Shown here piece after piece: positions 1,147 through 39,600 of a stretch of 64,000 bases of DNA; position 1 is the stretch's first letter; each line of letters opens with the position of its first letter. The notes under the pieces are model-generated. The model ran no database searches and had not been told where the DNA came from. It saw only the letters and a program-made list of their open reading frames with translations. Source of the stretch: Epiperipatus broadwayi (lineage: Eukaryota > Animalia > Onychophora); assembly GCA_028023455.1 (NCBI GenBank), contig JAQFVV010000002.1, forward strand, positions 33,108,001 through 33,172,000, given 5' to 3'. The translations under genes were made by a program, and so were the position numbers.

Positions 1147-1220
1147 GCATCTTGGTGGTCTAGTGGTTAGCATAGCTGTCTTCCAAGCAGCTGGCCCAGG
1201 TTCACTTCCCGGTCAATGCA
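1147..1220 (+). pseudogene. tRNA-Gly(TCC) pseudogene
   Basis: Closely follows the metazoan Gly-TCC consensus; anticodon arm GCTGT-CTTCCAA-GCAGC; 2-nt insertion in the acceptor stem and T-loop TTCACTT instead of TTCGATT; followed by TTT. Confidence 0.85.
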
Positions 1221-30074: not shown

Positions 30075-30634
30075 TGCTTAACAGACTGTCAGAGGTAATT
30101 GTTCTAACTGTTCATGCCCAAAAATGTAATGGACTGTGGTCTGGCACAATTTCCAGATGGATACTCAATGTATCAAAATGAAACAGTAAGCAATGGAATA
30201 TTGTTGATGGAGAATACGGGAAAATGTCTACATTATACTTGACCAATATTTAAGCTTGACTACAAAAGTTGAGGTAAATTTTAAAACTTGGTCAAAATAC
30301 AATTTAAAATGGTATACCCAGAGCCCTCCCAACTTACAAGTCCTATTATGTCTTGGAGTTCAAACTCAGTGAAGAAATTTGCCTTTAACTTTTTTCAAAG
30401 ATGGATTTAAATAGGATGGCAATAACATAACCTCTATATAAGTCCCTAATGGCTTTTTACTAATGAATATATCAAAAATGTGTGAACATGTACATAGATA
30501 TTCTAGTGAGTGAAGTATGAATGATGCTCGATAATCTAGAGACCAGAGAAACAAAGATTTAAACTTCAACAACAAATATTTATTAATAAAATCTGGGTTA
30601 AATTTATAACCTTTATAACTTAATAAAATATAAA
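30075..30634 (-). repeat. LTR copy (probable 3' LTR of the Gypsy element at 30075-36619)
   Basis: Roughly 90% identical direct repeat of 36075-36619; begins TG after (TA)n. Confidence 0.8.
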
Positions 30635-33600
30635 CATGAATATAAGAAAATGTGGATCTGTCTTTACTGTAATACAACTTAATATTGCTGTTGATTGGCG
30701 GTTACAACAAAATGGTCCCATACCCCAAGCTGAACAACAGAAGTTAAATCTTAAACATATCAATGAAAATGAAAATTATACAATTACAATGCATAATGTA
30801 GAATAAAGGAACTATTATTTTGATGATCAACCTATATTATTAGATGTTCAATGTTTAATTTGATGATGTCATCTGAATATATATTACAATTATGACTATG
30901 GATTGTTAATTTCTTTTATAGAGTTCATTCATACGATTGTTAATCATACAATTAGGATAATTTACTCATATATAATTACTTGTTAGTAAGTAAAATAAAA
31001 TATTTAATTTTATATATTAAATGCCTAATTAAATGTAGATGTTTAAAAATCTTACTTTTGTCTTTAAAGCCAATGTCCAGACGTCAAATCTAATACGCCC
31101 ATTTATACTAAGATTTTATTTACAAACATATAAAAAATATATATGTATACCTTGAGTTGTGTATTTATATTTTTCTCCTCATATCAAAATTTAAACAAAA
31201 TGGGTTCTTTACATTTTAAGATTTAGAGAGAAAAAGTTTTCTGAAAATGAGTAAAAGGGTGAGAAAAATCGTAACTCAACTCTCAGTATACATCAAAAAA
31301 TACAAATATAAAATATTTAAGAGCATCAAAATTAAACGAAATCTTGGATTTCTTTAAAAATAAAAGGTTAAAATTTGTAAGATGGCTTCAGTGTTTTTAG
31401 CAGATGGTGTATTTCTTTTATTCGAGCATGTTGAATGGTTTCAAACTCCAACCACTTAAAAGAATTCCCACGATAAAAACGAACTCATAAAGCTCCTGAT
31501 TATGTACCAATTTCCTTTCTGAATCCATGATAAGTTTCTCTAAATCATTCCATGCTTATTTAGACCCTAGGCATACCAATGGTTAGACTTTATTACCATC
31601 TGATGACACGAAGAAGGCACAAAGATCCTGCGACAATTAATTTAGCAAGATTGCATCATTATATTATATATCTCCAAATAAATAGTTAAATGTAGGTTTT
31701 TTCAAAGTTCGCATTATAATATAAATAGAAACGCTATTTGTATGCAGTTTATATACATATATAAGATGTGTTATAATATATTTTACTTCAAAAGAAATAC
31801 AAATTAGTATTTTAAAATTCTATTTCATTATTAGTTTCCTTTTTTTTTAAAAGCATTTTATAATTATACGACTTTTGCAGTTGAAAAGCAAATATAAATC
31901 TCTCAAAATTTATTCAAACGAAAGTTCATAACTTAAATAAAGAATGTCTCTTTTCTTTTTAAAATATCCTGCACTTTACCAAATCAATAATAGATAAATG
32001 CAATTCAAGATATTAAAGTTTTTTTTTTTTTAAAAATAGAATCATGAGAATTAATATAATAATAATAAAAATATTCTTATTCTAAAGCTTTACTTGAAAC
32101 TTTATTCCTTTCTTTTTTTAACAACTCTCAACAAAACTAAACTGTTGCTTAGCTTTTTTTTTTTATGTTCAAAATCAACAAATGTTTACTCTTTTCTTTT
32201 ACACTTTTAAACAAAAGAAACTTGGTTAATAATAATTTGATGTCAGATTCTTATTTCTGTCATGTCATGATTGAAACTCAAATCTTCATGTACAAATGTG
32301 TGTGTAGATATTTTATTCCACATTTAATAAAAAAAATTAGTTCATTCCTTTATGAATGTATGGTTATTTATGTATATATGTGCCTCAAGATATCCTAATA
32401 ATTATTTAATGTTTAAAATGCTGGCTGCCTATCTAATCTTTATAATCTTGGCTTGTCATTCCAAAACATGTTATTTATTATTTTTTATAAGGACTGAGCA
32501 TCATCTTACATTTCCCCCATCCTTAGAGGATTAAAATTTAGCCTATTGTCAAATTTTAGCACATGAACAAAGGGTTGGATGGTTATCACGTTGGATCATT
32601 TTATTATTTCTTTTTAAATAGTTCTAATGCTTATAAAAAAATAAATCGATATTAATGAGTCTCATTTTTGTTGGCCTCCTGTCCTTATCTTTCTTCTTGG
32701 AATTGAACTGCTGTTATCATTAACATTGTTCCTACTATAACAGAATTACTGACTATATGATGGTTGAATAACCTGAATTTGACTGATTACATATCTGTTC
32801 CAGAAGGCACATATTTGGGGTTGTCAGCCTATATCCTGCTCCTTGAAGTCTTATTGAATTTCTATAAGGACTGAATGAAATATGGGATGCCCACCACATT
32901 GTATGGGTCAACTCCCACATCTCAGCTGGTTCTAAGATACCCCTAGTGAATGTTTCCACATTAACTTGAGTGTATCCTCATATCTACTTACTCTAGCCAT
33001 TTACTCACATACAATGCTACCTTTCTCTTATTATAATATACTTGCATATACACATTTATTATAAACTCCACTTTCATTTACATTAGTCATATTCATTCAT
33101 TTATGGACAACTGAGCTTCCGCATTTGGTGGTTCTTCTTGATAACCAATGTACGGCTTCAATATCTGTGCATTATAACTTTGTTTTAGTTCTCCCTCAAT
33201 GTTTAACCAAAATGTATTTGGGCCAGCTTGTTTTTCAAGTGTATGGTCCAGCATATTGTTGACAAAATTTATAATAAACATTATCCATCGGTTTACTTGG
33301 GTGATGTTTTCACAAAAACCTTGTCTCTAATCTTAAAGTGATGTCTACTTTTTCTTATTCCTAATATTAGCTTTATCAGTTAACTGTTGGCGAGTCATTT
33401 GAATTTTTTTTGTTATATTGATGACATTTAATTGGAGGCTGGTATTTTAAAAGTAACGAAGGAATATGTTGGTCAAAATGTAGTTGTATGGGTGCAAATC
33501 CAGTGGATTCATTTGCACCCCAATTAATATAATTCTCTACATGTTCTGTCTGCTTCCGCCACCCCCTATTACCTATATGGTTTAATGACCAAAAATAAAA

Positions 33601-34197
33601 TTTAATGTAATGTCCTTTTTATATACATATATAATCACATAACATTATGTATAGGGTTCAATTATTAAGAGTCTATTTTTATGTTCCAGCGTCACAATCA
33701 TGAAGTCCATCCCTTAATTTGTGCCTTTCTCTTTTTAAAAACTTTCATTCACATATTTAATGAATGTGAAGGGGCCTTCATAAGTGTTGCAAAGCTTATG
33801 GAACTTGGGACCTTTGTTTCTTTGCAGGGAATATGGTTGTCTCCAGTATCATCTGGCAACTTTCTATGATTTGGTCATCTTTTCAATTATGAAGACTTCA
33901 TATGCCATAATACACATTTAAGATGAACAAGTCTATCTTCAAAATGGTCCCTCCCAAGTTGGCTTTACTAATGGGAGTTTTTTGTGGAAAGCCTTTGAGC
34001 AAATAGTAACCTTCCTTGGATTCTGCTACGATGCTCATGGACCTTATATTTAGAGTAAACTTTAAGTTCTGAACATAAGATGCTCACACTAATTTGCATT
34101 CCTCGGTCGTATACTTTACTCGTTCCCGTACTCATGGGCAGTTAGAATACAGGAACCAGTGTCACTCCAACATGTATTTGGGATCACTCCTCCCAAC

Positions 34198-35200
34198 TTA
34201 AAATTGGTGGAATGATTTTCTATTCAGGTACTTAATGAGTCCAACTAACAGAAGACTCAATTCAAAAGGTTCCGCAGTAAAAGAATGCTTAATATTTCGA
34301 TTGGAGTCAAAAATGAAACCAGGTACGTCCTTCATATTATTATCACTACTCATACTATCCATACTACTATTAATATCATCAGTTTTAGCTTCTATACTAT
34401 CTATATTCTCCTTTATATATTCCATCTTTGTTTCCAAATTATCTATCAGTTTTGGTTGCCATGGTAGCCTTCATATCCTCTATCTTAGTGGTCCTGGGTT
34501 TGGTGAAACTGCTTAATTTTATTATCAATTCGGGTAGTAATGCTTTCCATAAATCCAGTGAATCACTCTTGACACTGCATGTTCCCTATGTTTACCTCTA
34601 TTTCTCATCTCTTCTACATCTTGCTTCAATTCCATATTACTGTTATGCATTTTATCCATCTCCGAAGATAACCGCTCCATGTCTGTGGACAATTTCATTT
34701 CAATGCCACTAATTCTCTTCTCAACTTTCTCATCCAATTTTTCAATATCTTTCTTCAGATCTCTTAAACCATGTTTTCTTTCAATTCAGTTTCTATTCTG
34801 TCCATATCAGCCTTGGTTACCATGTTATCCATCCGACCACTCATGTTGCTCAAATCAGCCTTGATTGCATCTATCTGACCACTCATGTTGCTTACATCAG
34901 TCTTGATTGCACCTATCTGATCACATCATTTTGAGCATTTGCATCATAGCTGCCCCATCTGCTGTAATGTGAGTTGTCAGCTTGAGGTGGTTTTCTGATT
35001 TCATTAATAGGGGTCTCCTGGTTTTGAGAAACTGGCTCTATTCTTGCATTGACAAAGAATGTTCAGTTCCCACCATTGAACCCGCTGGGTACATGTATGT
35101 CTAGTGACCCTTCTTGTCCCACATCAGGATCACCCTCACCTTCATTGCTACTAACATCCTGTGGCTTTACATTTGATTCTTTATCCATACTCGCTAAATT
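34198..35200 (-). pseudogene. Gag-like coiled-coil ORF, broken
   Basis: GQIDAIKADLSNMSGRMD (42-bp repeats), DLKKDIEKLDEKVEKRISGIEM, METKMEYIKENIDSIEAK; frameshifts and stops. Confidence 0.6.
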
Positions 35201-35729
35201 TTTCCCCCTTCTAAGTAACATGCAAAATATTTCCCCCTTCTAAGTAACATGCAAAATATTTTTCTTTGGAATATTTATTCTATAAACACAGTTCTTTTCT
35301 ATACAATACTTATAACATGTCATAGGATTTCCTACCAACTTGTGATATCTCATGTGAATATTTTGGTTACCTTAAGTATTTTATACCTCATTGTTATCAA
35401 TGCCGGTTTTACATATTTTGCCCTTTATCTGCCTCACTTGCCTACTCTTATTAGATTCTTGATCATCTATTTAGTTTTGGTTTCTATTTATCAATTCATA
35501 CTTTCACTCGAAGTTATTTGGAGTTATTATTGATTGACTTAAGTTAATTATACCATTAAGTTGCCATATTGTTTAATCCATAGGGTTATATAACATATAG
35601 TCTGTTAAATGACTAACTAAAATATGATGTACCAAGTTATACTGAAATTATGGACAATTTCTCATAAATTCAATTTGTTTCACACTAAAAATATATGGTA
35701 AAACCTGATATTTAATTCTCTAAAGCTCA

Positions 35730-36125
35730 ACACATTGTGTACCAAAATGTAATAGACCTAACTATTCACATGTCGTGAACCTAAGAACTCATGCCTACCA
35801 CATTGCATGCCAAAAATGTAAGACCTTAACGGGAATGAATTCACTAATTGGCTAGTACGAACGCAACATGGTAGTCAACTTACAGTAAGTCTATATGTAC
35901 TGGTGCACCTATTATTTAGACACCACTGTTGATTGTGCCAAAAATATAAGACCACAGTCTGCACATGTGGTGAACCTAAGTATTCACTCCTATCATGCTG
36001 CACACCAAAAATGTAACAGTATACTTGTCACCAACAATCATCAACTAACTGAGCCCACGATGGTGCACCAAAAATGTAACACTGTCAGATGTAATTGCTC
36101 TAACTGTTCATGCCCAAAATGTAAT
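35730..36125 (-). repeat. Repeat-spacer array of LTR-end/PBS units in the Gypsy leader
   Basis: TTACATTTT(T)GG at (plus coordinates) 35742, 35810, 35938, 36005, 36068, 36114; spacings 68, 128, 67, 63, 46; spacers mostly dissimilar. Confidence 0.85.
36051..36070 (-). promoter_or_regulatory. Primer-binding site next to the 5' LTR
   Basis: GTTACA TTTT TGGTGCACCATCGTGGGCTC; resembles the tRNA-Lys(CTT) PBS TGGCGCCCAACGTGGGGCTC (Ile/Met also similar). Confidence 0.6.
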
Positions 36126-36619
36126 GGACTGTGGCCTGGCACAATTTCCAGATGGATACTCAATGTATCAAAATGAAACAGTAAGCATTGATGGAGAATA
36201 CGGAAAAAGATTTACATTATACTTTACCAATATTTGAGCTTGACTACAAAAGTTGAGCTAAATTTTATAACTTGATCAAAATACAATTTAAAATGGCATA
36301 CCCAGAGCCCTCCCAACTTACGGGTCCTATTACATCTTGGAGTTCAAACTCAGTGAAGAAATTTGCCTTTAACTCTACTCAAGGATGGATTTAAATAGGA
36401 TGGCAATAACATGACCTCTATATAGGTCCCTAATGGCTTTTTACTAATGAATATATTAAAAATGTCTACACATGTACGATAGATATTCTGGTGAGTGAAG
36501 TATGAATGATGCTTGATAATCTAGAGACCAGAGAAACAAAGATTTTAACTTCAACAACAAATATTTATTAACAAAATCTGGGTTAAATTTATAGCCTTTA
36601 TAACTTAATAAAATATAAA
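36075..36619 (-). repeat. 5' LTR (outer boundary unresolved)
   Basis: Ends GTTACA on the minus strand at 36075; direct repeat of 30075-30634. Confidence 0.8.
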
Positions 36620-39600
36620 TATAATAATATTAAATCGTGCTGTCACACTTCCAACGTAAAGCTGTAACAACAAATAAAAAACTAAATTAAATGGCTGAGC
36701 GTTTTCAAGATGTACTTCTCATATTCATAGCCAGTTATGATTCTTTCTTTGAAATCATTATATAAATAAATACCATATGCAAATTCTATGCAAATGAGTC
36801 ACTAAGACCATCTTTTAGATATAACAAAACATGCATCCATACGAATAATGGCGGAGTCCTCTGCTAGAAAGTAAGATATTCTTAAAAGTTTGAACCTTTT
36901 TTCAAGTACAAACATAGAACGTCACAAAATTACAAAAAAATCAAAGTAATAATAAAATGAGAAAGTGAAATTTAATCAACCATTCTGCTGTAGAAGCAGA
37001 TACTTATATTTTATCATAGACTATGTTTTTATTTGCACTTCCTTTGTCATATTTAGTGGAATATGGGTTCAGCACATTCACAAATCGCTAATATCAATGG
37101 TTTAAAAATATTGCTGACAAAAATAAAGCCTAAAATTAATAATGTGGTAGCAGCACACCAGGTTCAAAACATGATTTTTATTTTAATATTCTTCATTATC
37201 TTAATGTTCTTTGTGTATGAATATAACAGTGGTTAATTTTAAAAAATAATTTTATAATTTAGTTTCAAGATGTCATATCTTTTTTACTGTTTTCGAATAT
37301 AGATAGAAACATAGGTACATAAAAAAATGTAAATTTGCCACATTGTCTTTGCATTGGCTTCAAGAAGATAGACTGCTTTGGGGGGGGTGCTGAGCAATTT
37401 TTTCACTGAAATGTGGCAATAGACCAAATAAATTTTGGAATCTCTGGACTAGATGATTCAAGATTAATAGTTTGTTAGTATATACTAGCAACTTAATAAT
37501 TTATAAGTAATTTACTCGAGCAGATTTTTTTAATATATGTCTTGAGAATTTGCCCTCTCCATCAATTTAGAAATATCATAATTAAGCAACTAAGACAACC
37601 AATACATCAACTTCAGTCAGTTTTTCTTAAATTCCATCTCAAAATTAGACAGCTTTGAAAGCACGTGATCTATTTTAAGTTTTGCATTTTAGAGGAAAAA
37701 AAATTAATTCATAATAAATTAAATATGGAGTAGTTATTTTTTTGTAGAAAAAAGTTGCCAAATAATAAGGCACTACACAGCAACTTGAATGATGGTAATA
37801 AGTATAGCAAATGTAATTTATTAGAATAATTAAAATTTTCTAATTACTGTACTTTCAAAGCAAAAAAAATGTTTCTTATTGAAATGAATTTTTTCAATTT
37901 ATCATTAGAACAACAACTGAGGAACATCTCACTTCTCAAATGGTAATAAAAGATCAGTTTTCTTGGAAATTATTTTTTGGTGGGAAAAATTGGTTTTTCG
38001 TGTTTTAGTGATATTTAATGGCAATAATTAATTATGTTACATAAAAGCAATAAAAAAAAATTGGAAGATTTTAATATGTATATTGTCTGAAAAAAACAAT
38101 CCATAACTAAAACTAAATGTTGGTAATAAATATTTAAAATATAATTTCAAAGATCACATAATAAACAGGAAACTTATAGTTGCTTACATTTAAGGTTTTC
38201 TATTTTAAATTTATCCCCCACCCCACCCCAATATTTTCAATGAAAATTGATCTTTTATTGCCCATGTTCATCATTAATTGTTGTAATGTAAATGAAAAAA
38301 TTGTCATTCTCAAAAAAAAAAATCCCCCATTTTAAAATTATTAATAGGAAAACATTAACTTTACTATGGTATAAATTGCTTTGCTACATTTATTATCATC
38401 ATTCAAGTCCATGTGGATTTTTTAAAAATTATTTTCAGTATTTTTTATTGATTTGTTATTGAATTTTTTTTTTATAAGACAAATACATAAATATGGAACA
38501 TTTAATTTATAGATTAATTTCTTCACTGATTTTTTTTCTATAAAGTGCCATCTGGTAGATAGATTGTGAAATGTAAGATAAATCACATACTATAACAGTA
38601 CCAATATGATTTTATGTTGGCTATGTGATAGTACACCAGCAGGCAATGGCGCAATGAAACAAAACAAATCAGGACTATCTCTGTGCGCATGTTATTTAAA
38701 GTCATCCATATTTGACTGTAAATAAATTAATATAATTTAAATTTAATCTTACGAATAGTCTCTTTCTTTCTACTTGTAGAATATGATAATTCATTATTAA
38801 AATGTTACAAAAATATTTTCATTATAATGAAACAAAAAAAGAAATGAATATTAAAACATTTTGTAGATGTTTTAGACCTTAACAAATAGAAAAAAAATTG
38901 TTAAAAAAAAGTCAAGTATTTAAAAAATGAAGAAAAACAATAACGTAAAACATATGTAAATAATATTTTTGTTATGAATAATTAATGTACTGTAATATCA
39001 TTATTTTCTTTCATTTGTTATCGTTAGCTTATTTTGAATTATATTTACAATCAAAGCAATTATAATTATTTAAATTGTTTATAAACTTTTTCTATATAAA
39101 AGCACAATTAGGACTTAGTAACAATGAAATTTTAGATAAATATACTTCTGGGAAAAAATAAATAGTTAATAAGAGAAAACTAAACAAAAAGAATATTGTG
39201 TTTTCTTTATAGATATTTGTTCATAATTATGCGAGCAGATAAATATGAACTCCATATCATGTTATGAATTTTATACATTGAAGCTAATATGTTACAAACC
39301 TGTTTCAAATTTTTTTTTTTTTAAATTACAAATACATTCAATTTTTATTCTGAAGATTCATTAGTTAAACGAGAATATGAGAAAAATAATAATAATAATA
39401 AACAAACTAAATTATAGCTTTATACATGTTTTTTTTTTATTTGTTTGTTATGTATTCTATACAAAATATTTTGAAAACATATTAAAAATATATAAAAGTT
39501 GTTATACATATATACAAATAAATAATGAAATTTGTATTTATCGTAAAAATTATCACATTTCTTAAAGCAAATATCTTTTTTTTTAAAGATTTATGTACAA

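Follow-up and report, generated by a model that had tools for sequence, protein, structure and literature searches.

Tandem modules of an LTR end and a tRNA-Lys(CTT)-type primer-binding site in the leader of a Ty3/Gypsy retrotransposon family of Epiperipatus broadwayi

In retroviral replication the extent of U5 is set by the primer-binding site (PBS) in use, and LTR boundaries are usually taken as fixed by one PBS. In 2004 Voronin and Pathak reportedly studied engineered vectors with two PBSs, both of which initiate; initiation at the downstream site is said to put the upstream segment in U5, and hence in both LTRs. LTR retrotransposons are also known to carry hypervariable tandem repeats in their untranslated regions, one example being the array of Su(Hw) sites in Drosophila gypsy. 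The Drosophila Gypsy element uses tRNA-Lys,2 as its primer, which binds an 11-nt PBS directly 3' of the 5' LTR (Gabus et al. 2006, PMC1635307). It has more than one tRNA-binding site; the second, near the 3' end of the genome, pairs with a different portion of the tRNA and is dispensable for cDNA synthesis (PMC1635307). A different kind of primer site is multiplied in the Sireviruses of plants, whose polypurine tracts are clustered by the LTR junction and conserved family-wide (Bousios et al. 2010, PMC2829016). Here we describe a retrotransposon family in the onychophoran Epiperipatus broadwayi in which the PBS and the LTR end are duplicated together. A brief literature search with a few phrases found no natural tandem PBS array, which is weak evidence of novelty.

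The window, by which we mean the whole 64,000-nt stretch of DNA analysed (G+C ~28%), holds on its minus strand the 5' leader of a Ty3/Gypsy LTR retrotransposon that is old and degraded (Table 1). Direct-repeat search and pairwise alignment identify two LTRs of ~550 nt each, ~92% identical and 5985 nt apart. The initial annotation had drawn a single LTR at 36075-36619; it belongs to a real pair, its 36075 end is the TTACA of unit 2, and its outer limit is given in Table 1. The 5' LTR starts with TA(TTTATATT..) and ends with ..GTGTTACA, a terminus set by analogy with family copies whose LTRs stop at TTACA. The 3' LTR starts with TGTTTATATT, i.e. TG, and its final two bases mismatch the terminus of the 5' LTR. 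The two LTRs remain homologous across unit 1 and part company a few bases at most from the unit 2 TTACA. Unit 1 therefore belongs to both LTRs, and its duplicate in the 3' LTR carries a seventh copy of the motif described below (30129-30119). The array had been placed between the 5' LTR and a putative gag-like ORF; unit 1, however, lies inside the LTR.

Table 1. Features of the window copy and of its unit array (positions are those of the window)
Feature	Position	Strand	Description or basis
5' LTR	36075..36621	-	Direct repeats and pairwise alignment to 3' LTR
Unit 1 (45 nt)	36080..36124	-	Inside LTR (U5); PBS-like part fits no tRNA (best Gly, p=0.066)
Unit 2 (63 nt)	36017..36079	-	LTR terminus at its TTACA; then TTTT and the boundary PBS TGGTGCACCATCGTGGGC..
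Unit 3 (67 nt)	35950..36016	-	Standard unit with strongly decayed PBS; 74% identical to unit 5
Unit 4 (128 nt)	35822..35949	-	First ~66 nt a standard unit; last ~65 nt a family-wide insert unrelated to the unit
Unit 5 (69 nt)	35753..35821	-	Conserved penultimate unit, in almost every copy examined
Unit 6 (last)	35684..35752	-	3' limit arbitrary; continues into unique leader
Degraded internal region	30637..35683	-	Short stop-free pieces
3' LTR	30078..30636 (30078 approximate)	-	Homology to 5' LTR

The window copy is wholly decayed and inactive. No minus-strand ORF of at least 80 aa is present in its internal region of ~5 kb, and ten stop-free pieces compared with Pfam gave no retroelement domain and no pol, yielding weak matches of coiled-coil type. 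Inspection of the flanks by eye gave no convincing target-site duplication, and no purine run was seen by eye adjoining the 3' LTR. Two short tandem duplications lie inside the element, at 34827-34910 (42 nt x2, 88%) and 35196-35261 (29 nt x2.3, 97%). On the opposite (+) strand, an ATG-initiated ORF of 93 aa (35895-36176) overlaps the array, with no evidence that it is a gene.

Within 36124-35742 the motif TTACATTTT(T)GG occurs six times on the minus strand. Its copies start at 36124, 36079, 36016, 35949 (this one reads TTATAT), 35821 and 35752, and are thus spaced by 45, 63, 67, 128 and 69 nt. When one mismatch is allowed, the whole window contains 20 matches on both strands, six of which fall in this one 383-nt stretch. 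The other 14 matches give an expectation of ~0.04 per 383-nt stretch on one strand and, by our own arithmetic, P(at least 6) ~1e-11, so that the clustering is far beyond chance. The motif array that the initial annotation had reported is therefore real, as is its identification of the repeated core with the LTR terminus plus the start of the PBS, for family LTRs stop exactly at ...TTACA. The anatomy of each unit is the same: the LTR terminus TTACA, a T-rich spacer of 3-5 nt, a PBS derived from that for Lys(CTT), and ~40 nt of leader.

What had been taken for spacers, unrelated to each other apart from the third and fifth, are in fact homologous over their full length in an alignment of 43 units. 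Identity among the units of the window copy is 54-74%, and it is because they are only this much alike that Tandem Repeats Finder, run on the window, did not report the array. The array is a decayed tandem repeat with a period of ~69 nt and not a repeat-and-spacer array. A decayed seventh unit, suspected in the 128-nt gap, is rejected; the second half of this long unit is unrelated to the units. We also rejected the idea that the tail of the unit is a copy of U5, since the last 40 nt of the units and of U5 share nothing beyond ..GTCCA.

The primer was sought among host tRNA genes found with the Rfam tRNA model, which gave 713,541 first-look candidates genome-wide, and with ARAGORN; ~13 isoacceptor types were sampled. 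The PBS TGGCGCCCAACGTGGGGC follows from the host tRNA-Lys(CTT) genes, downstream of which lie T-run terminators. For each unit of the window we took the best of 39 host tRNA 3' ends and compared its score with those at 1236 control TGG sites. The best match is of Lys(CTT) type for U2 (p=0.0008), U6 (p=0.0016), U5 (p=0.019) and U3 (p=0.066), and the boundary PBS of unit 2 is a decayed Lys(CTT) PBS with 15/17 aligned positions matching. The host Lys(CTT) PBS is also matched by the LTR-proximal units of other family copies, where the match begins 4-5 nt past TTACA and extends to 17/18 positions in L018, 16/18 in L021 and 15/18 in both L007 and L022. Mismatches in these LTR-proximal units lie mainly at two CpGs; transitions make up 69% of mismatches and are concentrated at the same two sites, in line with the transitions and CpG decay that the initial annotation had noted. 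Across 125 units, positions 4-18 match at 0.69, compared with 0.44 in shuffled units, which bears out the proposed tRNA likeness against such controls. The distal PBS-like parts match tRNA at 10-13/18 positions. The string GCTCGA in U2-type and penultimate units is suggestive of tRNA likeness past the 18-nt PBS; as a gapped tally of positions 19-24 gave 0.58 against 0.57 in shuffled units, likeness past the 18th base is not claimed.

The initial annotation had interpreted the array as a CRISPR-like stack of sites for tRNA-Lys(TTT), Lys(CTT)-like and Ser primers, which might provide alternative primers, keep a record of priming or act as a decoy for tRNA fragments. The Lys(CTT) part of this assignment stands on the test above. 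U4 does have Ser(TGA) as its best match (p=0.027), but this is confined to the window copy, and its orthologues in other copies are unlike Ser. U1 contains GAACAG, which recalls Lys(TTT), but against Lys(TTT) it scores p=0.27 and its best match is Gly (p=0.066). Both candidates were rejected. Moreover, the units of such a stack would not be expected to be homologous along their full length, as these are, and when all 125 units are ranked against tRNA ends, Lys(CTT) variants fill the top six places. The multiple-tRNA reading is thus largely refuted, and we consider the CRISPR-like stack, whether as a source of alternative primers, a record or a decoy, to be very improbable. The sequence comparisons support one primer type, Lys(CTT), rather than three.

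Sequences resembling a primer tRNA joined to the end of an LTR occur elsewhere in the genome. L082 (G000:C2:34160300-34162800) shares the window's contig and lies ~1 Mb away. Its tRNA-Lys(CTT)-like part (841-898) encodes CCA and adjoins AATGTAACTGGACC.., which reads as spacer, TTACA and U5 end in reverse complement; over 50 nt it is 84% identical to the PBS/U5 junction of L018. This tRNA-like part sits in a repeat of ~260 nt in which CTGATGA strings are present, and a search for a hammerhead gave no Rfam hammerhead above threshold. The arrangement at L082 resembles a fossil junction between primer tRNA and minus-strand strong-stop DNA, of a kind that Ohshima et al. are said to have proposed in 1993 for tRNA-Lys SINEs. 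L059, L067 and L075 form a SINE-like family in which a tRNA-Lys(CTT)-like part with encoded CCA precedes (G)TTGTAACGATCCAGAG.. and a tail common to them, the part after CCA resembling the reverse complement of another ..GTTACA U5 end. In the window itself, ARAGORN reports a tRNA-Gly(TCC) at 1149-1220 (+). At several stem positions it departs from the Gly(TCC) of L074, which would fit a pseudogene or the head of a SINE.

The leader is present in at least 420 copies in the 5.6-Gb genome by a first-look count, 40 of which were scored. In copy L076, Pfam identifies RT_RNaseH_2, RT_RNaseH, Integrase_H2C2 and SH3_Tf2-1 on pieces split by stops; the RT core domain itself was unmatched among these pieces. 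Because the domains stand in Gypsy order, the family is assigned to Ty3/Gypsy. Array structure was read from 30 leaders in register. Complete arrays carry 4 to 9 units. Nearly all copies examined have the three distal units (118-131 nt, 69 nt and the final one), and it is the number of units upstream of these that varies. In L003, L021 and L013, neighbouring units are closer to each other (90%, 81% and 80%, respectively) than to any other units, which indicates that duplication recurred in separate lineages. For window units the closest paralogues reach 54% at most and the orthologues in L003 reach 92% (unit 2) and 84%. A DNA contig of a related copy jumps 36011-36120, which equals two units. 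The youngest subfamily, whose copies are 96-98% alike within one LTR type and which has therefore been active recently, carries a minimal four-unit array.

At least three unrelated LTR types bear the same leader array. What two otherwise unrelated LTR types have in common is the last ~15 nt of U5 and the leader, and the start of homology at this point suggests that recombination may have exchanged LTRs while retaining the integrase end and PBS. In two copies foreign DNA is inserted just past the first TTACA/PBS, 177 nt in L015/L078 and 584 nt in L025. Contigs from small sequencing runs, presumed to be of RNA, match U3 and internal parts with 85-95% likeness and are thin over the array; these RNA-like contigs show neither expression nor silence of the family.

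All LTR termini located so far fall at a TTACA, and they do not all fall at the same one. In L077 and L078 the LTR stops exactly at the first TTACA, with zero units inside; the window copy has one unit within its LTR; and in L081 both LTRs hold two whole units and stop at the third TTACA, after which the 3' LTR is followed by unrelated DNA. We searched with a 431-nt query consisting of U5, a U1-type unit and three further units of L081. Among its 40 scored matches, nine stop at q205-206, which is the second TTACA (after one unit), another nine at q276-277, the third TTACA (after two units), and one at q346, the fourth; this last, at C171:2663638-2663983, is a candidate for an LTR with three units. 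Eighteen termini were called as 3' or solo LTR ends from alignment stops, in addition to four copies that were paired with their 5' LTR or read directly. Elements on C12569, C6215 and C12398 have a long 5' match together with a 3' match stopping at q206, and in the element on C8 (L081) the stop is at q276. A query from the young subfamily returned almost solely 5' LTR and leader matches and was uninformative on termini. Where a junction acts as a terminus, its sequence is the ..GTCCA TTACA also seen at the end of U5; junctions of the three distal units keep TTACA alone, and these units were never at an LTR terminus among those located.

These termini bear on whether the array is a neutral minisatellite, that is, a by-product of template switching in which only the LTR-proximal PBS is used and units reach the LTRs through duplication or recombination within U5. 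L027 (C12398) and L081 share the same 5' array (q1-420, 87%), with the same order and number of units, and yet their 3' LTRs end one unit apart, at q206 and q276. Duplication internal to U5 does not predict this outcome, whereas priming at the next module does. That nine termini of each kind lie exactly at TTACA further argues for integrase-competent ends. A neutral repeat would be at home with the unstable number of units, the low tRNA match of the distal PBS-like parts and the minimal array of the youngest subfamily, and also with the poor boundary PBS of L081, where 11/18 positions match without gaps. This last value means that priming in L081 needed partial complementarity or a primer that our tRNA set does not sample. 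Weighing these points, together with the conserved core described below, we regard the neutral minisatellite as a rather improbable account. The positions of the termini instead suggest that more than one module has started reverse transcription. Several PBSs are indeed stacked, as originally noted, with 4 to 9 modules per copy.

Conservation is far higher in the core than elsewhere in the unit. Paralogous units within one copy have an identity of 0.94 over the 12 core columns and of 0.59 over the others; for orthologous units the corresponding values are 0.97 and 0.87. Because units were located via the core, these core identities carry some bias, yet nearly every 69-nt period has a recognisable core. 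CpG-free columns outside the core are not conserved. A drift of this size between core and remainder is a further point against neutrality, and it raises the possibility of a regulatory or packaging repeat, in which the core is a site for a host or element protein (as in an enhancer, insulator, Gag-binding site or packaging signal) and likeness to a PBS is ancestral only. Insect Gypsy-type elements are known in which the 5' UTR bears short protein-binding motifs set in arrays. The conservation of the core even in the three distal units that never form an LTR end fits such a role, but we can name no binding factor, RNAalifold predicts zero pairs from 43 units, and an Rfam search of 35300-36700 (E<=1) gave a chance match alone. 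Every base of the core also falls on the LTR terminus or the PBS start, and the combination of integrase end and PBS start is reason enough for constraint in modules able to act as termini. As an explanation of the array, a regulatory or packaging repeat is therefore unlikely in our view. It can nonetheless coexist with the module explanation proposed below, and in the distal units the core may be conserved for another role, e.g. protein binding.

We propose, as the likeliest account, that the tandem modules, each with an LTR end and a Lys(CTT) PBS, were probably made by template switching of the reverse transcriptase, and that downstream modules have sometimes primed minus-strand synthesis and so moved the U5 boundary. 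The proposal starts from what is observed in the family, namely the anatomy of the modules, the Lys(CTT) origin of their PBS, the variation in copy number and the differing LTR termini; from these we infer the priming events and the mode of duplication. The ancestral duplicated segment would have comprised the last bases of U5 (..GTCCA TTACA, the integrase end), the T-rich spacer, the tRNA-Lys(CTT) PBS and ~40 nt of leader. Template switching between the repeated modules is the most likely source of both the duplications and the losses. As each module has an LTR end and a PBS, a downstream module could start minus-strand synthesis if the tRNA annealed there instead. The sequence upstream of the PBS in use would then become U5 and be copied into both LTRs, and the new LTR would still end in TTACA. 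Downstream priming of this kind would account for the unit 1 found in either LTR of the window copy, and for sister copies that share an array but end their LTRs one module apart.

It is also conceivable, but in our judgement doubtful, that the array is a selected device, in which redundant modules let the element shift its initiation site and its LTR boundary. If so, replication would be kept when the proximal PBS is mutated or is blocked by host factors that recognise the PBS, with tRNA 3' fragments or DNA-binding repressors in view, and U5 would grow by the capture of leader modules.

Use of the modules would offer a simple mechanism for the growth of U5 and for variation in LTR length, and those who annotate such elements should be aware that PBS-like sequences can sit inside LTRs. 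The family is also a testable system for the tRNA complementarity that a Gypsy-type element needs, and for redundant primer sites in relation to PBS-directed host silencing.

All that the array shares with CRISPR arrays is a superficial likeness, a short conserved core that recurs at regular intervals: here the stretches between cores are homologous to each other, acquisition machinery is absent and the host is eukaryotic. Hypervariable UTR repeats lie downstream of the PBS and have neither a PBS nor an LTR end, unlike the modules described here. Like the polypurine tracts of Sireviruses, the modules are clustered copies of a primer site for reverse transcription by the LTR junction; those tracts, however, are plus-strand primers with 8-nt motifs upstream of the 3' LTR in Ty1/copia elements, with no reported shift of the LTR boundary, whereas here whole modules are duplicated. 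With Drosophila Gypsy the family shares the Ty3/Gypsy type, a primer of tRNA-Lys(CTT) type and the presence of more than one tRNA site, but its sites are tandem copies of one module of LTR end and PBS in the 5' leader. The two-PBS vectors resemble it in having at least two PBS copies per leader and an upstream PBS segment inside the U5 of both LTRs. Those vectors are laboratory MLV/HIV constructs; in Epiperipatus broadwayi an outcome known from engineered retroviral vectors is encountered in a natural genome, with 4 to 9 modules, each bringing its own LTR end.
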